DNA of 64,000 nucleotides from Rhodosorus marinus CCMP1338 (lineage: Eukaryota; Plantae; Rhodophyta), in assembly GCA_029953675.1 (NCBI GenBank), contig JAMWBK010000005.1, positions 1,984,001 through 2,048,000 of the forward strand, given 5' to 3'. Both the position numbers and the translations under genes were made by a program. Positions within the stretch are counted from its first letter, which is position 1. Each line of letters starts with the position of its first letter. A model generated the notes under the pieces. It was not told the origin of the DNA, did not search any database, and was given only the letters and a program-made list of their open reading frames with translations. Positions 13,936 to 26,000 of the stretch are shown here, in pieces.

Positions 13936-15340
13936 ATAATCAGTATGTGAACGGTGCCCAATATCCTAAGTAAGTAGGCGTTTAGCTTCCTCGAGTTCGC
14001 TCCGAATATCGGATTAGCCTCGTCATGTGCTTCCCGCCAACCGCGGGTTGTATAGACTGATCTGTTTGGAACTTGTGAATGTCAGCCAGACAATGAGAAT
14101 GAAATTGTACATTTCAAGAATCTGCTCTTCACATTGCCGGTCTTATATCTGAGGCCACTATTAACACGAGCTAGAGGGAAGGGAAGTGCTCAGGCAGTTG
14201 CTCACCACCCCACTCCCGTGCTTCAACTCCCCCGTTGACGTTTTGATCGATGGTGTCTAATGTGGACACCCAAGCGTTATCAGGACCCCGAAGACCACAG
14301 TAAGAAAGGCCTTCCAGCGAGAAACTCCTTGCCAGTACGGCTTCCTGAACAACACTAATTCGCCAGTAACCCCAGCCAAGCCGTGTCCAGCAATACCCCA
14401 GCCTTTGCCACACCCCTCAATACCCACTAAACGATGCTAGTCAAGAGCAAACCCCAGTTTCGAAGCACTACAAGATACAATCGTGTAGTAGATATTCTCC
14501 AATCCTTTCCAGAAAGTTCTTCTGAAACACCAGCTAAGCTTCCTACCCACCATCATATACCCACTACCACGACTCTCCTCTGCGCTCCTCCCCCGAAGCG
14601 CGCGGGGGCAGCGAATCATTCTATCCACTACAATCCAGCCGCAGAAACAAAAGAAAAAAGAAAACTTGCCAAAAACATAGACATTTCTCAAAGGGGCAAA
14701 ACAGGAAAATTCCATCAGCCAAATTTGACGACCAGCAAAAAAAAAAATACCGTTTTGGTAAAGCCGGCCCAAAATTATCCCCCTTTTTTTCAAAATCTTG
14801 TTCTTATCTTCCCCTTAAAATTTTGCGTCCATGGCACGTTCCCTTTAAATATTTCAATAAAACAAAATTCCAAGAAAATCCGTTCATCGTACCGCAGGAC
14901 CAGCTAAAATATTCATATTTTCATGAATATCTTGGGTTTAAGATACAACTGAAAAAAGGATAAATGAGTTCCTTTCAACCAATAGTAAGAGGCCAATTGT
15001 CTTTTACTAATTATAGTCAAATTAAAAACTTGCACGTGTCTTAATGTAACACGGCGGCCGGTAGTCTGGGGGTCTTCAAATTTTATGATATTTCTTTTTC
15101 TATGGGGGAGAGGTTTAATGAGAGTACTAATAGGCCAAGCTCGCATTTGGGCAGGGGATTGGGGAGGGTGACCTGGGACTGGTTGTGTGGTAGATGAGTG
15201 CGGTGGAGTAGTTTGACTGGTGTTAGTGAGACCTGCTTGCTTGTTTCCTTTTCTTCTTGAAAGGGAAAATCGCCGATTTTCTTTGATCTTTTTGGGGGGA
15301 GGGAAATTGTGGGATTTGTACTGTGAAATTTCGGGACGAG

Positions 15341-17880
15341 ATGGATCGGTTGGGATTTGTATCTGGGCTTGGTGGCTCCCTGCTACGGAAGCCTGCGTCG
15401 ACTGAGTCTCGACTTGGAGCATGGGGAAGGACGTCTCTGGTTCAGAGGTCGAGGAGGCCGTCGCCGAGCATTGTGAGGATGGTTGCGGCGGAGCCTGAAG
15501 CAAAGGAGTCCAACGCCGAGGAGTTCAAGTTTCAAGCCGAGGCTTCGAGGGTCATGGACCTCGTGATCAATTCTCTCTACTCGAACAAAGAGATTTTTAT
15601 GCGAGAGCTGATTTCGAACGCATCGGATGCCTGCGACAAGTGCAGATTGCTGCAGCTTACTGATGAGAGAGAAGATCGAGAGCTCAGTATTCGAGTGAAG
15701 GCCGACAAGACAACCTCCACCCTCACAATCCAGGACACTGGCGTTGGCATGACGAGGAAAGAGCTCATTGATAATCTTGGAAGCATCGCAACATCTGGAA
15801 CCGCCAAGTTCGCAGAAGCGCTGGGGAAGGGGAAAGCGGATACTTCTCTGATTGGACAGGTACGTTTTCTGTTTGCCGGTTGATCAAACGTACGGGTTAC
15901 TAACTGCAACGGCGTTGTGTTCATTCTCCTCGCGTGTCTTAGTTCGGTGTCGGGTTTTACTCTGCATTCCTTGTCGCTGAGAAAGTGACAGTGCTCACAA
16001 AATCATTCACTGACAAGGGCTCACCCGTGCTCAAGTGGGAGTCTGCTGATACATCTTCTTACACTATCGAGGATGTTGCCGACGAGGACTTTGGAGAGAG
16101 CGGGACGAAGATCATACTTACCTTGAAAAAGGGCTCTGAGGAGTTTTTGGAGCTGAATCGAGTTTCTTCGCTCCTGAAGAGGTTTTCGGAGTTCATTGAT
16201 TTCAACATCTACTCATGGGACGAAAAGACAGTTATGGAGGAAGTCCCAGATGGTGAAGAAAAGGACGAGGAAGGAAACCAGAAGATGAAGAAGGTGCCGA
16301 AGACGGTTGAGGACTGGAAATTGATCAACGAGCACAAGCCAATCTGGCTTCGACGTCCCAAAGAAGTCACACAAGAGGAGTATAACGACTTTTACAAGAG
16401 CATGTCCCGGGACTTCAATGATCCAATGGCCCACTCGCACTTTTCAGCCGAGGGAGAGGTTGAGTTCCGCTCAATTCTATTCACCCCGTCTGGTAAGGAT
16501 TAGTCGCGAGTCACTCTGATTGACTGCAGCAGCAGCCGATGATAATCCAGAATCTGATTTGACTTGCTTTTTTTTCCTCAGTTCTTCCGTTTGAGCTGAG
16601 GCAGAATATGTTTGATGAGGGTGGTCGCTGCGTCAAGCTCTACGTGAAGCGTGTTTTCATCTCTGACAAATTCAGTGAGCTCATGCCAAGGTTTTTGACC
16701 TTCGTGAGGGGAGTCATTGATTCTGAGGACCTGCCCCTTAACGTTTCGCGAGAGATTTTGCAGCAATCTCGGGTGCTGCGGATCATTTCCAAGCGCCTGA
16801 TAAGAAAATCACTGGATATGTTCATGGATCTTGCGAAGAATAAGGATCAGTACAAAATTTTCTGGGACAACTTCGGACGCTACATCAAGGCTGGAGTCAT
16901 CGACGAGCCGGACTACGTAGAGCCGCTTTCCCAGCTACTTCGATTTGATTCCAGCGCGTCGGATGAGCTGACGTCCTTGCAGGAGTACATTGAGCGAGCA
17001 CCGACGGATCAGAAGGAGATTTACTATTTGGTCGCGGAGTCGCTGCAGTCCGCAAAGAGCTCCCCGGCAACAGAGAAGCTCACCGCCCGCGGTTTCGAAG
17101 TCATTTACTTGCTCGATGCTGTGGACGAGATTGCTGTCCAGACACTGCAGAAGTTCAAGGGCAAGAGAAATGCGGAAGACAAGGAGACGGAGGAGTTGCC
17201 GCTCAGCGATATTTCACGAGATAATTTCAAACTCCCCGGTGAAGAGGATGAAGCAGAATCAGAGAAGCTCACCGAGGACTTCGCGAAGGTAACCGAGTAC
17301 ATGAAGGGAGTTCTCGGTGATGCGGTTTCGAAGGTTCAGGTATCTACTAGACTGACGGAGTCTCCGAGTGCCATTGTGCAGTCGCAGTTCGGCATGTCCC
17401 CAACAATGGAGAGGTTCATGAAGTCGCAGATGAGCGGTCAGGATGCTGGACAGCAATCGTTTTTGAACCAGAGCCGAGTCTTGGAAATCAACCCATCGCA
17501 CGCGCTGATCAAGGACCTGCAAGTCCGTTTGAACGCAGGTAAGCGAAATAATGATGAGAAAGCGCCTTCGTTTTGTGGCAGCGCTATTCCCGGATCTTGA
17601 GGTGTTTTGTGGATGAGAAATTGATATGGGAGCTCGGTGTCTCTTTTCTCGTGTCCTAGGCCAAGATGATGACGCTACCAAGGATACGGTTGGACTCCTG
17701 CATGAGCTTGGACTGCTCTCTGGAGGTTACAACATCGAAGACTCTGCCGGGTTTGCCAAGCGGATAGCCCGCTTCATGGCATCTAGCCTCTCGAGCTCGC
17801 CAGTTCCGGAGGCTAGCAAAGCTGACGAAGAAGACAAATTTGGCGAGACAACGCGAGTCAACGCTGAAATTGTCGACTAA
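15341..17880 (+). CDS. HSP90C: Plastid Hsp90 (Hsp90C/HtpG-type)
   Basis: Transit peptide, then [44 protein letters not shown]|[41 protein letters not shown]; introns 15860-15942, 16493-16581, 17539-17659; no MEEVD tail. Confidence 0.95.
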
Positions 17881-18323: not shown

Positions 18324-19075
18324 TCAACAGCCCAGACTTTCTCTAGTTGGGTTGCCAGTTGTTGGGTTCTCGCCACCAAACGTAGGGTTTTTGCAGATAT
18401 TTCTGAGAGCAAAGTCGCCAATGTATACGTCAGAAAAGTCAGTGTCCTTGAGGTTTGCGTCCTTGAACGAGGACTCAGAGAGCACTGCGTTGGTGAAAAT
18501 CGCGCCCTCCAAATTGGCTTTGTTGAAGACTACTCTGTCAGCGATAGCGTTGCTGAAATCAGCCCCTTTGAGATTAGCACCAACAGCCCATGCCTTGGAC
18601 ATAACGGTATCCTTAAATATGCTCCCAGACATGTTGGCATTCTCCATAATCACTCCTGCAATGTCGAAACCGCTGAAATTCATCTTGCTCAGATTGCATT
18701 CGCGCAGATCAAAGAGGGAGTCCCTCGCAGCGTTGGCCTGTCCCATAGCAGATGACTTGACCTCACATCTGAGCAATTAATACGAACCCAAATCACTTCT
18801 TCATGAGTCGACAGATATGCTTGATTCTGTCTTGCATCATTGTGGATAGAAACTAACCTGTTCGGATTTGTCCTGTCAATCGGAGGAAACTTTGCGTTGA
18901 TAGCCGATTCCACGCTCGCCGGCGCGACTACCAGCACTGCAGCCGCCGCAAGACTAAAAACGCCAACAGAAACCTTCCTCCCAATCCCAGACTCAGTATC
19001 GTGAGCGCAAGTCACCACGCTACGGGATCCTCGCGAATCGACCCTCCCGCTACCAACACCCACCACGAACGCCAT
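18324..19075 (-). CDS. Thylakoid lumen pentapeptide-repeat protein (TL17/17.4 kDa-like)
   Basis: Bipartite MAFVVG...AAAAVLVVAPASVESA presequence; PPIDRTNPNRC...GQANA...DLREC; A(D/N)LxxA-type pentapeptide repeats; LC.NPT..GENP.TG..TRESLGC end; intron 18769-18857. Confidence 0.9.
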
Positions 19076-19698: not shown

Positions 19699-21945
19699 TC
19701 AATTTTGTAAGTTGTTGATTGCCTCCGGTTCTGAGGGTTTCAAGTTTGGTACGAACGTCAGGCATCTGTCCAGATTGTAACTATCCTTCGACAAGCTCTC
19801 CAGTTTCATGTCCGCAATAGATTCACATATTTCCTGTACCTCATGCGCTCCGCGTGAGCTAACCTCGAAGATCAGACACCCTCGCTGCCCCCGTAGAATC
19901 TCTATGCCTGAGTTTTGGCACTCTCGTATCGATCTGTTGAAAGTTGTTGAGTGCCGAGGGTTGAGGCTGAAGAAAGTCTTTGCACGTGGGTGTATCTTCT
20001 AACATTACTGGTTGCTTTACATACCGACAGATATCCTCGTAGCATTTATAGCTGCCTCCATTCGTTATCAAGCCCATAAACGGTTCGTGCTTCCTTGATG
20101 ATGTAGACATGTGCTTCTGGTCCTCAGCTGAGTAGTACGGGGGATTGCAAACGATGAGGTCGAAGCCCCTCCGCAATTCGTTTCTCAGTTCCGAGGGGAT
20201 CTTATCACTGCAGAGGCAGGAAGAGGCAGGAAGAGGCACGACATCCTGAGCAAAGCATCACTACTGAAGATCTTACTGAAGTTTTTAGAAAGTGATTACC
20301 AACCTTTCATGTAGCTTCGCAAAATCTGCCTCGTGGAACGAACAGCGGTCAGACATTTTCAGGCTATCGGCGTTGCTGGAGGCTATCTTCAGTGCATCCG
20401 TGGACAGGTCAAGAGCAACACCAAATGCCGCTGGGAGACGGTTCAGCAAAGCGAGAATAATGTTCCCGCTACCTGTGCCCAGGTCAAGTATTCGTGGACG
20501 GTCTACAACAACATCTTCTCGTACACATCGGAACGCGGGAGCGTAGAGCGATTCACATGAGAAACGAACTGGTCCTTCCCCGACGACTCAGTGTGGAATG
20601 GGTGAAGAGTTACCTCCAAGCGCATTCATGCAGGCATGGACAACGGTCTCGGTTGCCTTGCGAGGAACGATCACCGATTGCTTCTCGACGAGAAAGGAAA
20701 GACCATCGAACTCCTGAAAAAGAAGCGTATAACCAGAAGGACCACTTCAGACGCGCGCAATTACCAACGGAGAGGCCCCTGGGTTTGCTTCACCTGAGTA
20801 CCCCGCAGATACGCGAGAGGCATGTCGTCTTCATGTCGAACTGAGGTGGACTTTTGGGCTTGAAACTTCTCCTCTCGTTTACGCAAAGCTTTGAATTTTT
20901 CCGGCTCCTCGTTGTGGAACGCATGTTCACGAGTGCGATCATCATTTCCAGTTGAAAACCTGAGTGAGAGCTGAGAGTAGGAAAACCATCATTAGGAGAG
21001 CGGGAGGACACGCGCAGTGCCAATGCTATTGCTGCTGCCGAGCAGACCATGGATACGTATGTTCCTTTCAACGGAGATCTCCTTCTGCCCCCAGACTTTG
21101 TGAGGATGTTGATGCCTGCCTTAGCCAGCGAGTCCTTCAGGTAACTAATATCCAGAGGATTACACTCGACATCTACTGTGGTTACGTAGCCAGTGCCCGT
21201 TTTTGTGGAGGTCAATGGCGATACCTAAACAGCAAACCAAGACTTTATAAACCGTGGGCCTTGAAAAGAATCGCGTTCCTGCACACGTCCTACCTCATAC
21301 ACCCTTCCGTCATACGCGGGAATCGACACTGAAGAAGTGATCTTGCTGTCGACAAGTGCACGCATCACCGTTGACAGGCTTTGCTGCACATACTCCCTCT
21401 CAGGACAACCGTCTCGCACCATTACCAAGAAAGCTCCAACTCCTCGGTTAACTCGGTACAGCGATGTGAACGCTCCTTCCGTTCTTGGACGGACCTCATC
21501 GTTCTCAGTCACAGTAGCGTCGGGAGCAAGCGGGAACCCGGGCGGTTTCCAGAAGACCTTTATGTTCTCTGTGCTCATCCGTCTTTCGAGCTCTAAGGGT
21601 TCCATGTAAGCAAAAGAGCAGTTCCTTGAGAAAACGGCAACGCCAGTGGACGAGACTAGAAAATTCTTCGATAGCGAATTGCGTACTGAACATTGCGCCT
21701 AGACATGACTGGTACCCCTCAATAAGTTCAACTCTATCCCCTGCCTTTAATAATCGAGTCGGTTCAACGTTCCTCTCGCCGTTGAGCACAAGAAACCCAA
21801 GTTTCAAAGCATCAAGGGAGCTGCTTCTCGAACCCAGTACTCGTCTGAACTCGTCCAAAAGCACGAACTTATTGATTCGGTATCCTTCATACGAGTCAGA
21901 TACGACGACTTTTAGCCGCACTCCCTGGCTGGTCAACCCGCTCAT
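19699..21945 (-). CDS. Fusion protein: S4 domain + degenerate RluA/RluD-like pseudouridine synthase domain + PrmC/HemK N5-glutamine methyltransferase
   Basis: S4: GYRINKF...SRSSSLDALKLGFLVLNGE...RLLKAGDRVEL. PUS-like: ENIKVFWKPPG, SLYRVNRGVGAFLVM, VMRALVDSKI, TTVDVEC. PrmC: MPLAYLRGTQ|EFDGL..VIVPRKATETVV, ILDLGTGSG, DLIVCNPPY, LIFEV, KD...DRC. Frame-preserving GT-AG introns 21225-21293, 20971-21056, 20714-20793 link the modules. Start codon uncertain. Confidence 0.72.
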
Positions 21946-23008
21946 TTGATGAACCGATGAATTTCGCTTTAGGGCTTGGGTGCTCCTCAGGGAAAACGAC
22001 CACCGCATGGAGGTCGCACATTAAGCAAGAGTCCGTTGGGCTACTGATACTAAATCGACCCGCGTTTCTACTTATCGTGAGCCAATCGGTGGCGCTTCGG
22101 CTTCCTAGATGGACCTTATCTGATTGCTTGCATCAGACCGGCGCTGCTTCCACAGGGGCAACAACAAAAGATAGTGAAAATCTAATCCTGTCGTCACAAA
22201 GGCTGCGAAGCACCTTGTCCAAACTCACGAGTCGCAGCTTCTTTCACTGCAGCCCTCTTCTGCCCTCAGAAGAAAAACTCCAATGCCGGGATCCACGTAA
22301 TATAGCGCTCAGATACATCCCTGGAAAACGTCGCTCGACCTGCGATGAGCATCCGCTCGCGCTCGAGAGATGCAGTTTGCACTATCCGTTTGCTGGAACT
22401 TGGCCCGTTTAATTTCCCTCTCACAGACAGAAAATCCAGTTCTCATGCTCTCCAAAATCCCAGGTCTATCCAGTGTTCAAAATCCTCAATCAGTCCCCAC
22501 CACGCCCCCACCGGCTTCCTCAGAACGTAAGAACGACCCTCGTCTGGATCATCATGTTTGTTATATTTGTATGCCTTAAGCTGAATCGACGATTCCTGGA
22601 TCTGAGGACTACCTTTGTGTTTCAATTAACATTAACTTATTTGCGAACATTTCCAAACGTTTTGGGTTTTTTTAAAGAAAAAGGAAGGACCTTCCCGGGA
22701 CATGATGGAGGACGTTTTTGGGAACATCGGCCATGGATTTCATGACCTAACAAATGGACGCGTGTAACATTGGCCATGCTTGAGATTTTTCGTTGGACCT
22801 GTTTTTTATTTATTTTTGGTGGAAGACGGAAGACTCCACAGGTTGATGGATGACATCCTGTCAGATTGAGGGTTGGGTCGTGGTGGGATATAATCGCAAA
22901 AGCTGTTGAATGTAGAGTTGAGGGAGGCAGGGTGGGAGGGATGGAATGACAATCGGAACTGGATGTTAGTAGTAGGAACAAAGCTTTTATGGAATTTAGA
23001 GTCTAGCT

Positions 23009-26000
23009 ATGAAGTTTAATATAGGAGATACTACGATTTATTTTCCGTATCCGTATGTCTACCCTGAGCAATATGAGTATATGAAGGAACTGAAGCATGC
23101 GTTGGAGTCACACGGCCATGGGATTATTGAGATGCCTACGGGAACGGGCAAGACTGTTACTATATTATCTTTCATTATGTCATATCAGATTGCTCAACCG
23201 GATGTTGGGAAACTAATCTATTGCACTCGAACTGTGGGCGAGATGACAAAGGTCAGAGTCATGGATACTTTTGCCTCTACGGAGTCAGATGTGCAGTTAA
23301 CATTTCAAGAGTTTTATCGACTGTGTGCAGGTCATGGCGGAGTTGGAACGTGTAGTAGCTTATAGAAACAAATGTCTTGAGGAGGAGAACGTAGACATAT
23401 CCAAGGCAAAGCAAGGCGTCATTGCGGTGGGCCTGACGACCCGGCGGAATCTTTGTTTGCACCCAGACGTATCCATGGCAGATTCTCGAGAAGAAGCTGA
23501 TTCGATGTGCAGAAGTCTAACCGCGTCTTGGGTAAAGTATCAGATCGGAAGTCACCGAACAAGCTGATCTAGAGATAAGCAGAGACTGAGAATCGTTCAT
23601 CTTTCTTCACCGTTTTCCACGCGCCTGGTCCACCAGGCGCGTTCAGCTGCCATTGAGCGATCTGATGGATCGGGCGTCTGTGAATACTACGAAGGCTACC
23701 GCAACGAAGGATCTGACGCGGTTCTGCCCCCTGGATTCTACGATATTGACCGGCTAATGGAGTTCGGGAAACAGCGAAAGTGGTGCCCTTACTATACTGC
23801 GCGACATGCTTTGAACTTTGCCAACGTCGTGGTGTACAACTACCAATACCTTCTGGTTCGCGCTCACCCCTCAAATTCTGAGCCTGTTGAGAAAAAAAAT
23901 TCTTTCCCAATTGTGACTCACTTGCACTGTGGGTGCCAAATAGGACCCTAAAATCGCAGGGTTGATTAGTAACCAACTGGCTAGAGAGAGTATTGTTGTA
24001 TTCGATGAAGCACATAACATCGACAACGTATGTATTGATGCTCTGAGCGTGAACTTGCGAAAGGATACTCTCGGCAAGTGCAATGGAAACTTAACCACTC
24101 TATCCAACAAGATCAGCGACTACAAGGTAGAGGCGGACCCGTAAGATCTGTCAAACGTATCACGCGAAGCTAACACAAATCCCCACAACTGCACCCGTTT
24201 GCGTAGGCTCGCGATGCTGCACGCCTGCGGGAAGAGTACGAGCGCCTGGTTCGTGGAATCTCCACCACCCTCATTGAACAGAGAACGGAGCAGACGATGG
24301 GCGAATCTGGAGTTAGTGAACTTCTGGGCGCCCCAGTGCTTCCACAGGACATAGTCGAAGAGACTGTGCCGGGAAATATTCGAAGAGCGGAGCATTTTAT
24401 TTCATTTCTGAGGAGAATCGTTGAGTACCTTCGCGAGAAAATGACCATCCAGCACGTCTTTCAGGAGAACCCAAAATTGTTCCTCAATCAAATGCAAAAT
24501 ACGCTGATGACTGACGCGAAGTCGCTCAGGTGAGCTCTTAGCATCGGCGCGATGCTTAACTAGCGTACGTGTCTGAAAAAATCAACTTGCTTGGTGCTTC
24601 GCAGATTTTGCTCGGAGAGGTTAAAGTCCTTGGTCACAACATTAGAAGTGGAGAATCTTTCCGAAATGACCCCCCTCCAGCTTGTGTCGGACTTTGCGAC
24701 TCTGATTGGAACGTATGGACGGAGCGACAATTTTGCGATCATTTTTGAACCCACAGACCACTCTGGCATACCAGATCCCCTGCTGCAACTGGCCTGTTTG
24801 GATGCGTCACTGGGTATCAAACCAGTCTTTGCCCGTTTCCAAACGGTGATCCTGACTTCCGGTATGTCGGAGAACTTAGAGTCAAGCTGGTTCTTGCATG
24901 ACACTCAGGAATTCGCTGCACTAACTCCACTTCTCGATCCTTTGTGAATGACCAGGGACCATTTCGCCGCTTAACTTGTACTCGAAAATCCTGGGCTTCT
25001 CACCAATTGTCGCACGTTCTCTCAGTATGTCAATGGAGAGGAAGTGTATATGTCCGATGATTGTCTCAAGGGGTCCCGACCAGGTTGGTTTCTCAAAAAC
25101 GCAGAGACGGTTCATGCGAAGGCTATCCCCCTGAATGATGGGGTTGCGGATGTGGATTTGCTGACAATGGTGTTTATCCAAATGCGACTAACTGACAGGT
25201 CTCGATGACGTCCAAGTTCATCTCTCGTGACGACTTGTCTGTTGTCCGAAATTATGGAAATCTTGTGATCGAACTGGCCACACACGTGCCAGACGGAATG
25301 GTCGTTTTCTTCACAAGCTACGTTTACATGGAGCTCATGATATCGTACTGGGATGAAATGAACGTCATCAATAGAATACTTGACAAGAAGCTGGTTTTTA
25401 TTGAGACACCTGTACGTGACAACAGTTTGTATTACCTTATCTAACACTTTCACGGTCAGGCCATGCCCCGCTCAAGATATCTTGAATTCGGTTTGCTTCT
25501 GTTCTGCTAGGACATCACTGAGAGCAGCCTTGCGTTGGACAACTACCGGCGAGCCTGCGACTGTGGACGCGGTGCCGTATTTTTGTGCGTCGCCCGAGGA
25601 AAGGTTAGCGTGCTCCAGGAATCGCAGAAATCTTATATTGTGTTACGTTCCCGGAGTCTCAAGTATTTTTTGCTCGCAATCGCTGACAGGTTGCAGAAGG
25701 AATCGATTTTGATGGCCACTACGGGAGAGCAGTGGTTGTTATTGGTGTACCGTTCCAGTATACGGAAAGCAGGGTTCTCCGGGCGAGGCTGGAGTACATG
25801 AGATTGGCCCTACAAATTAGAGAGTCGGACTATCTCAGTTTTGACGCAATGCGGCAGGCGTCCCAGTGCATTGGAAGGGTTATCCGATCTAAATCTGACT
25901 ATGGTATCATGGTTCTAGCAGACAAAAGATTCGTTCGGTGCGTTAGCGAATTCCTTGGGCTCTTGTGCACAGACTCGTCCTGACTTCGTGTTTGCTTGCT

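Follow-up and report, generated by a model that had tools for sequence, protein, structure and literature searches.

A predicted pseudo-pseudouridine synthase module joined to a HemK/PrmC-type methyltransferase in the red alga Rhodosorus marinus and in early-diverging fungi

We analysed 64,000 nucleotides of nuclear DNA from the red alga Rhodosorus marinus CCMP1338 (contig JAMWBK010000005.1, positions 1,984,001 to 2,048,000; hereafter the window, from whose first letter all positions are counted). The minus strand of the window carries a gene for a protein with three parts: an S4 RNA-binding domain, a predicted dead fold of the RluA family of pseudouridine synthases (PUS), and the catalytic domain of a HemK/PrmC-type N5-glutamine methyltransferase, which is apparently active. 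This architecture is real, transcribed, conserved and apparently uncharacterised, and it is built from two known families. We judge the chances about even that the pseudo-PUS works as an RNA-targeting module, which tethers the glutamine methyltransferase to a site on ribosomal RNA (rRNA) or on the ribosome and replaces the substrate-recognition domain of PrmC. Such a mechanism is plausible, and its organellar and release-factor specifics are its weakest part.

The gene has eight exons (Table 1), whose translation is identical to P0001, the hypothetical protein NDN08_001582 of R. marinus (546 amino acids, aa); its seven introns are 69–99 nucleotides (nt) long and all begin with GT and end with AG. 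P0001 was retrieved with the N-terminal part, at 95% identity (BLASTP) to a provisional gene model, together with P0002, a transcriptome protein from another strain of R. marinus. An earlier note on this DNA, made from its letters alone, had claimed a single gene and transcript for the three parts. This is what the transcriptome shows: P0018 (MMETSP0315, another strain), a full-length protein of 561 aa, runs contiguously from MRWS through the S4 domain, the PUS-like part and the entire methyltransferase, and is collinear with the whole model. At the PUS/methyltransferase junction, P0002 is spliced (…HEDDMPVAYLRGTQ/EFDGLS…) and then enters a retained intron 5. Because P0018 is full-length and P0002 is spliced over the junction, the objection that two separate genes lie here is removed. 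Both transcriptome proteins begin with MRWS, 21 codons upstream of the annotated start, so the true start is probably the upstream ATG and the protein probably 567 aa long. We conclude that one nuclear gene gives one mRNA and one three-part protein of ~567 aa.

The same proteins fixed the splice sites. The introns that the earlier note had placed at 21225–21293 and 20714–20793 agree exactly with P0001, and the S4-to-PUS junction, for which it had left two in-frame solutions, resolves as an intron at 21593–21686. A third intron, given as 20971–21056, has the right acceptor, but its donor was set 9 nt too early: the real donor is 21047, and a donor at 21056 is ruled out by P0001, P0002 and P0018.

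The transcriptome data also contain an intron-retaining isoform that lacks the methyltransferase. P0002 represents the most abundant transcriptome cluster (10 member sequences) and, as intron 5 (20515–20613) is retained in it, it has no methyltransferase fold. Retention of this intron in the window would make the protein read ...NALGGNSSPIPH and then stop, and the resulting isoform would be an S4 + dead-PUS protein of ~360 aa with the HemK hairpin alone. Another sequence, P0003 (141 aa), is a partial product that comprises only the linker and the HemK hairpin and ends in the same retained intron; its first residues, MILLYSQ, disagree with the spliced protein.

A Pfam scan of the Rhodosorus protein returned methyltransferase families only, with no match to S4 (PF01479) or to PF00849 at E ≤ 1. 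When the N-terminal half (~290 aa) was used alone, phmmer against PDB gave one chance match at E = 1, and a word-indexed search found Rhodosorus proteins only. Since the Rhodosorus sequence by itself gives no Pfam or PDB match to these domains, the PUS assignment rests on homologues and on structure. The homologues came from phmmer, run exhaustively with the N-terminal half on 1.84 billion representatives; it returned nine proteins at E ≤ 1e-3, P0001 included; the collinear fungal proteins among them had E-values of 1.8e-7 to 2.3e-4. Full-length collinear members were found in Dinochytrium, Rhizopus, Neocallimastix and a further chytrid, and the Phlyctochytrium member is truncated. In their PUS part the fungal members are less eroded than Rhodosorus. 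The Neocallimastix member scores 44.3 bits against PF00849 (gathering threshold 26.8; profile positions 2–150 of 152), the sole member to pass, and matches the TIGR00005 rluA_subfam model at E 1.9e-31, with all members below the curated cutoff of that model. Other homologues gave subthreshold PUS and S4 (PF01479) matches, and UniRef labels P0002 an ‘RNA-binding S4 domain-containing protein’. A profile of six N-terminal halves, searched against PDB, matched E. coli RluD at E 1.1e-15 over residues 24–281, which cover the S4 and the catalytic domain, and then RluA, RluC, RPUSD4, kinetoplastid mt-LAF3 and the S4 domain of uS4.

Structure prediction gave the same answer. The AlphaFold2 model of the full protein (mean predicted local distance difference test score, pLDDT, 88.3) contains an S4 domain with the alpha-beta S4 topology, and Foldseek matched it to RluD at 6.4e-12. 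The alignment used for this first model included bacterial RluD-like sequences, which makes the match partly circular; as a control, the N-terminal 289 aa were therefore modelled with only eight sequences of the fused family. The control model (pLDDT 77.9) has the same secondary structure as the first run. Its Foldseek matches were to RluD (1.3e-11), to RluD on a pre-50S particle (1.6e-10) and to the PUS of mitochondrial large-subunit (mt-LSU) assembly in T. brucei (3.9e-9), and all 19 matches with E < 1e-3 were pseudouridine synthases, with template-modelling (TM) scores of 0.50–0.55 to isolated catalytic domains. The S4 domain and the PUS fold that the earlier note had read are thus borne out by the homologue profile and by the control model, and the five segments it had aligned with RluD agree with the hidden Markov model (HMM) and MAFFT alignments.

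The data do not decide between RluD, which the earlier note had named, and RluC. The RluC and RluD equivalog models give similar scores, in an order that conflicts between members (for Neocallimastix, RluC 60.7 bits and RluD 45.1), and the top rank of RluD in PDB is mainly due to the lack of any other full-length S4+PUS structure from the RluA family in that database. As the two cannot be told apart, docking on helix 69 of 23S rRNA is a guess. The nearest intact bacterial relative of the PUS half is P0020 (298 aa, from an ENA metagenome; profile E 3e-28), in which HRLD and GRTHQIR are intact and which already has the KGKGLF...LPNKFxxxLxxE pattern at its C-terminus. Comparison with this protein suggests that the fused PUS derives from the P0020 subfamily and not from RluD proper.

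The fusion occurs also in early-diverging fungi and is therefore not specific to this genome. Judged by sequence, it is a conserved eukaryotic family with members in chytrids, Neocallimastigomycota, Mucorales, Zoopagomycota, a second alga-like genome and protists. Further fused members were found in Chlamydoabsidia padenii, in Dispira parvispora and in a rumen-type relative of Neocallimastix, and two divergent ones, P0045 and P0046, are each encoded by a single uninterrupted open reading frame (ORF) on their contigs. A collinear, intron-containing homologue lies on L005, a genomic contig of 4.3 kb (Logan SRR22824290, 1304–4236, GC content 0.49), at 27–50% identity. Its alignment breaks at P0001 residues 245/246, 304/305 and ~337, so that at least three positions match Rhodosorus introns; the contig probably comes from another red alga. 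All named members are annotated as ‘hypothetical’ or as ‘S-adenosyl-L-methionine-dependent methyltransferase’. The earlier note knew of no characterisation of this architecture, and our literature search likewise found no description of the fusion.

Some related proteins depart from the common layout. P0007 (476 aa) and P0040 (331 aa) have an S4 domain and a dead PUS (RLEIGCGG, with Glu for Asp) after a C2H2 zinc-finger-like sequence but lack a HemK domain, which places this pseudo-PUS module in a second architecture as well. In P0046, residues 1–110 (L001, 60–2060) form an extra, second-S4-like repeat (FIRHRIRQGHIFLNG...LVLGDTLAI) that precedes the usual S4 domain. In P0012 of Rhizopus stolonifer (754 aa), the methyltransferase part of the fusion is linked to a UPF0014 membrane-protein domain (PF03649, E 4e-73), probably a neighbouring gene mis-merged in annotation.

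The active site of the Rhodosorus PUS is predicted to be dead. In all known PUS families, an Asp serves as the catalytic nucleophile. The earlier note had read Asn in its place at 21447–21449, as well as an eroded GRTHQIR; the codon is as it stated, Asn stands there in all three Rhodosorus strains, and the motif-III Arg is gone in every fused member. In Rhodosorus, moreover, the column of the motif-IIa Tyr holds Met, and the HPxxGD of the PUS family has become AGINIL. Across the family the catalytic column varies: two Mucorales have Gln there, Dispira has Glu, L005 has Ser (FRPSRAIG) and a further three members have Pro. Between Rhodosorus strains the PUS-like part is 85% identical, close to the S4 domain (88%) and the methyltransferase (HemK; 88%), so by this measure the PUS part is a maintained pseudo-enzyme and not decaying sequence.

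The two halves of the protein are connected by a highly conserved linker helix, whose counterpart in P0020 is LPNKFSRYLKLERDRW. In the AlphaFold model it forms one long helix (residues 269–287) that runs into the methyltransferase, in place of the PrmC_N domain. From this correspondence, the linker appears to go back to the helix at the C-terminus of the PUS subfamily.

The methyltransferase half carries all motifs of the catalytic domain: PLAY, PRKATE, LDLGTGSG, NPPY and EPxxGL, with a PLAYxxGxxEFxG hairpin, and GTGSG and NPPY are invariant across the family. It passes the TIGR00536 hemK_fam model with 123 bits (cutoff 115.5; fungal members 119–128 bits) and stays below the cutoff of the TIGR03534 PrmC equivalog (157.4 bits against 199.1; fungal members 148–169 bits). 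The PrmC model outscores PrmB (91 bits) in Rhodosorus, a pattern repeated in the fungal members, and Foldseek matched the full model to PrmC in the PrmC–RF1 complex (2b3t_A, E 1.3e-17, TM score 0.72 on the target). What the earlier note had called a complete PrmC is complete in its catalytic domain and motifs but lacks the N-terminal helical domain: PrmC_N (PF17827, ~70 aa) found no match in any fused member, whereas all but few of the bacterial PrmC hits have it. As predicted from the sequences, S4+PUS has replaced the PrmC N-terminal domain ahead of a complete catalytic domain. In the 2b3t complex, the N-terminal domain of PrmC helps to hold the release factor together with the catalytic domain, and its loss therefore suggests a changed recognition of the substrate.

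In the mechanism that we propose, the dead PUS module would no longer isomerise uridine and would serve RNA recognition and docking in place of the substrate-recognition domain of PrmC. It would bind a structured rRNA element on the large subunit or its precursor, as RluD and kinetoplastid mt-LAF3 do, and the tethered methyltransferase would then N5-methylate a glutamine in a protein on the ribosome, be it a release or rescue factor of the GGQ type or a ribosomal protein. We infer docking from the charge of the two halves (isoelectric point 9.1 for the basic S4+PUS module and 5.3 for the acidic HemK domain), from the mt-LAF3 precedent and from the genetics of rluD and prmC. As the earlier note had it, and as the literature upholds, RluD modifies helix 69, PrmC methylates the GGQ glutamine, and rluD interacts genetically with RF2 in E. 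coli K-12; there, the defects of rluD and of prmC are both relieved by a more active RF2 allele (PMC3384335, PMC5373646). The RluD-like mt-LAF3 binds intermediates of the mt-LSU at their intersubunit face, and its essential role is independent of the catalytic Asp (PMC7703582, bioRxiv 10.1101/2023.02.23.529727).

Several observations weigh against this tethering mechanism. The full model has a predicted TM score (pTM) of 0.57, at which the relative orientation of the domains is unreliable. The catalytic Asp is kept in four members, two from chytrids and two of Neocallimastigomycota type (one of these from a metagenome), and Neocallimastix keeps the motif-IIa Tyr as well; the family may thus have begun as, or partly still be, a bifunctional enzyme. 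TrmM and METTL16, RNA N6-adenine methyltransferases with the HemK fold, are among the Foldseek matches. For the organellar form of the mechanism, the fungal homologues are unhelpful, as they have no equivalent of the N-terminal extension of Rhodosorus and begin directly at the S4 domain with acidic N-termini.

Other explanations of the gene were weighed against the same evidence. That annotation wrongly merged an adjacent S4/PUS-like gene with a hemK gene has a next to negligible probability: P0018 is contiguous and full-length, P0002 itself is spliced over the junction into the HemK hairpin, the same collinear fusion recurs in at least ten independent proteins of other organisms (two of them single ORFs), and the HemK part alone would begin without a Met or any N-terminal domain. 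The observations that would fit such a merger are that P0002, with its cluster of ten sequences, keeps intron 5 and ends without a methyltransferase domain, and that S4 + dead-PUS proteins without HemK exist (P0007, P0040). A bifunctional enzyme, in which the PUS is active despite its Asn and acts with the methyltransferase on the same ribosomal site, draws on the four family members that keep the Asp and on the purifying selection on the PUS-like domain. We hold it to be very improbable, given that Asn replaces the nucleophile in each of the three Rhodosorus strains, that every member has lost the motif-III Arg and that Met stands at the motif-IIa Tyr of Rhodosorus.

The remaining two explanations concern where the methyltransferase acts and on what. 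The earlier note had favoured an organelle-targeted protein, in which the dead RluD attaches to helix 69 of the large subunit in plastids or mitochondria and brings PrmC activity to the GGQ of organellar RF1/RF2. The basic 21-aa extension speaks for it. Conserved in three Rhodosorus strains, with no acidic residue here and no more than one in the other two, the extension is compatible with import into an organelle and may serve as a short presequence for it. PrmC is also the best-scoring equivalog, rluD and prmC are genetically linked through RF2 in E. coli K-12, and mt-LAF3 provides an RluD-like protein on the intersubunit face of mt-LSU intermediates. We nevertheless consider organellar docking on helix 69 unlikely: Neocallimastix, which lacks an organellar genome, has the fusion in its best-conserved form, the fungal members carry no presequence, RluD and RluC are indistinguishable, the PrmC N-terminal domain is lost, the score falls short of the PrmC equivalog cutoff (157 against 199 bits), and the extension is very short for a red-algal transit peptide. 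The hydrogenosomes of Neocallimastix belong to the genome-less class (PMC6856725). Because Neocallimastix is without an organellar ribosome or release factor, and because the fungal N-termini start at S4, the general function of the family must be something other than a role with organellar release factors. Alternatively, the HemK-like domain could have been re-purposed to methylate an exocyclic amino group of RNA (N6-methyladenosine, m6A, or N2-methylguanosine, m2G), with the S4+PUS-like module as its guide to an rRNA or tRNA nucleotide. Enzymes with NPPY include RNA m6A and m2G methyltransferases, TrmM and METTL16 are structural neighbours, weak HMM matches to TrmN and RlmF were obtained, both N-terminal domains are of RNA-binding types, and the domain that recognises a protein substrate has been lost. 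However, the elements of protein-glutamine methyltransferases are conserved in the family (the AYxxGxxxFxGxxFxV hairpin, IPRxxTE and EPxxAL), which makes an RNA substrate less likely, and the PrmC and PrmB models far outscore every RNA methyltransferase model. We regard an RNA methyltransferase as distinctly unlikely.

Retention of the fusion in Neocallimastix, without organellar translation, points to a new glutamine methylation, on a ribosomal protein of the cytosol or a factor bound to ribosomes there, or else to methylation of an RNA amino group. It is possible, if rather doubtful, that this conserved methyltransferase of eukaryotes is tethered to RNA or the ribosome, that its substrate is not an organellar class-I release factor and that its pseudo-PUS specifies the site. 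If true, it would be the first dead RNA-modification enzyme recruited to target a protein methyltransferase.

Bacteria have RluD and PrmC as two separate enzymes, and in E. coli K-12 loss of either one leads to the same termination defect, which depends on RF2. That nature has fused a PrmC-type domain to an RluC/D-type module is independent, ‘Rosetta-stone’ style evidence for both activities at one ribosomal site. The tethering mechanism would make a pseudo-enzyme under purifying selection the targeting domain of a protein methyltransferase, in the place of its substrate-recognition domain. The family is found both in red algae and in early-diverging fungi, among them a lineage that lacks organellar translation, and its substrate could reveal a new modification of the eukaryotic translation apparatus.

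Table 1. Features of the fusion gene in the window. Strand −, the gene is read towards lower positions.
Feature	Position	Strand	Basis or remark
Whole coding region	19699–22008	−	8 exons, 7 GT-AG introns; exon set equals P0001 exactly
Exons	21945–21687, 21592–21294, 21224–21048, 20970–20794, 20713–20614, 20514–20304, 20207–20025, 19933–19699	−	translation equals P0001
Probable true start ATG	22008	−	P0018 and P0002 begin MRWS...; 21 codons upstream, in frame
Annotated start ATG	21945	−	P0001
Stop codon	19701–19699	−	exon set
N-terminal extension, 21 codons (MRWSFSLRSTQALKRNSSVHQ)	21946–22008	−	basic, Ser/Thr-rich, 0 acidic residues
S4 RNA-binding domain (GYRINKF...LKAGDRVELIEG)	21715–21885	−	UniRef name of P0002, family profile, AlphaFold topology
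RluA-family (RluC/RluD-type) PUS fold, predicted dead	20911–21592	−	interrupted by introns 21293–21225 and 21047–20971
Asn codon AAC at the catalytic Asp position of HRLD (here YRVNRG)	21447–21449	−	alignment
Linker helix EEPEKFKALRKREEKFQAQK (family motif EEPxKFxAxRxxExxF)	20851–20910	−	seven invariant columns in the family alignment
HemK/PrmC-type N5-glutamine methyltransferase catalytic domain	19702–20823	−	starts M316 (window 20823); beta-hairpin PLAYLRGTQEFDGLSF, VPRKATE; introns 20793–20714, 20613–20515, 20303–20208, 20024–19934
S-adenosyl-L-methionine-binding motif I LDLGTGSG	20465–20488	−	translation
NPPY catalytic motif	20135–20146	−	invariant in all fused members extending this far
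Intron 1 (94 nt, GT..AG)	21593–21686	−	S4-to-PUS junction; EGYQSCLGAMF/KLERR
Intron 2	21225–21293	−	matches P0001
Intron 3	20971–21047	−	donor 21047 keeps Val-Ser-Met; two transcriptome proteins agree
Intron 4 (80 nt)	20714–20793	−	directly after PLAYLRGTQ, 12 codons into the HemK part; spliced in transcriptome proteins; position common to the L005 homologue
Introns 5, 6, 7	20515–20613, 20208–20303, 19934–20024	−	all within the methyltransferase part

Three neighbouring ORFs were assigned by reading their translations. An HSP90-family chaperone-like ORF, split by introns, lies at 15323–17600 (plus strand), and a pentapeptide-repeat-like ORF at 18324–18776 (minus strand) lies just downstream on the strand of the fusion gene. 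The start of an XPD/Rad3-type helicase-like gene at 23009–23365 (plus strand) is divergent from the fusion gene.

Among known systems, PrmC/HemK is the release-factor N5-glutamine methyltransferase of E. coli and T. maritima, with Mtq1 and HEMK1 as eukaryotic organellar homologues. It is the best HMM and the best structural match of the C-terminal half of the fusion (PDB 2b3t, 1t43, 1nv8), with which it shares the class-I fold, GTGSG, NPPY, the beta-hairpin and a PRxxTE before the fold. The fusion differs in having ~300 aa of S4+PUS where PF17827 would stand, and in its score below the PrmC cutoff. RluC and RluD are S4-containing 23S rRNA synthases of the RluA family, and RluD acts on U1911, U1915 and U1917 of helix 69. 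They are the top structural matches of the N-terminal half (PDB 2ist, 1qyu, 7bl5 chain 7, 1v9k) and resemble it in the order of S4 and PUS, in motif I (xWKPxG) and in the positions of motifs II and III; at ~14% identity, the fusion differs from them by Asn for Asp, the missing Arg of GRTHQIR, AGINIL for HPxxGD and the fused methyltransferase. Kinetoplastid mt-LAF3 (PDB 7aoi_XP, 6yxx_EC) has the RluA-family PUS fold in common with the fusion and acts as a scaffold of the large subunit, but it keeps its active-site residues and stands alone, with no methyltransferase. The bifunctional PrmC/TrmB protein (NCBIfam NF002421) is a precedent for a PrmC domain and an RNA-directed module in one polypeptide. 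It is bacterial, and its partner domain is an active C-terminal tRNA m7G46 methyltransferase, whereas the match of the fusion covers the PrmC part only.

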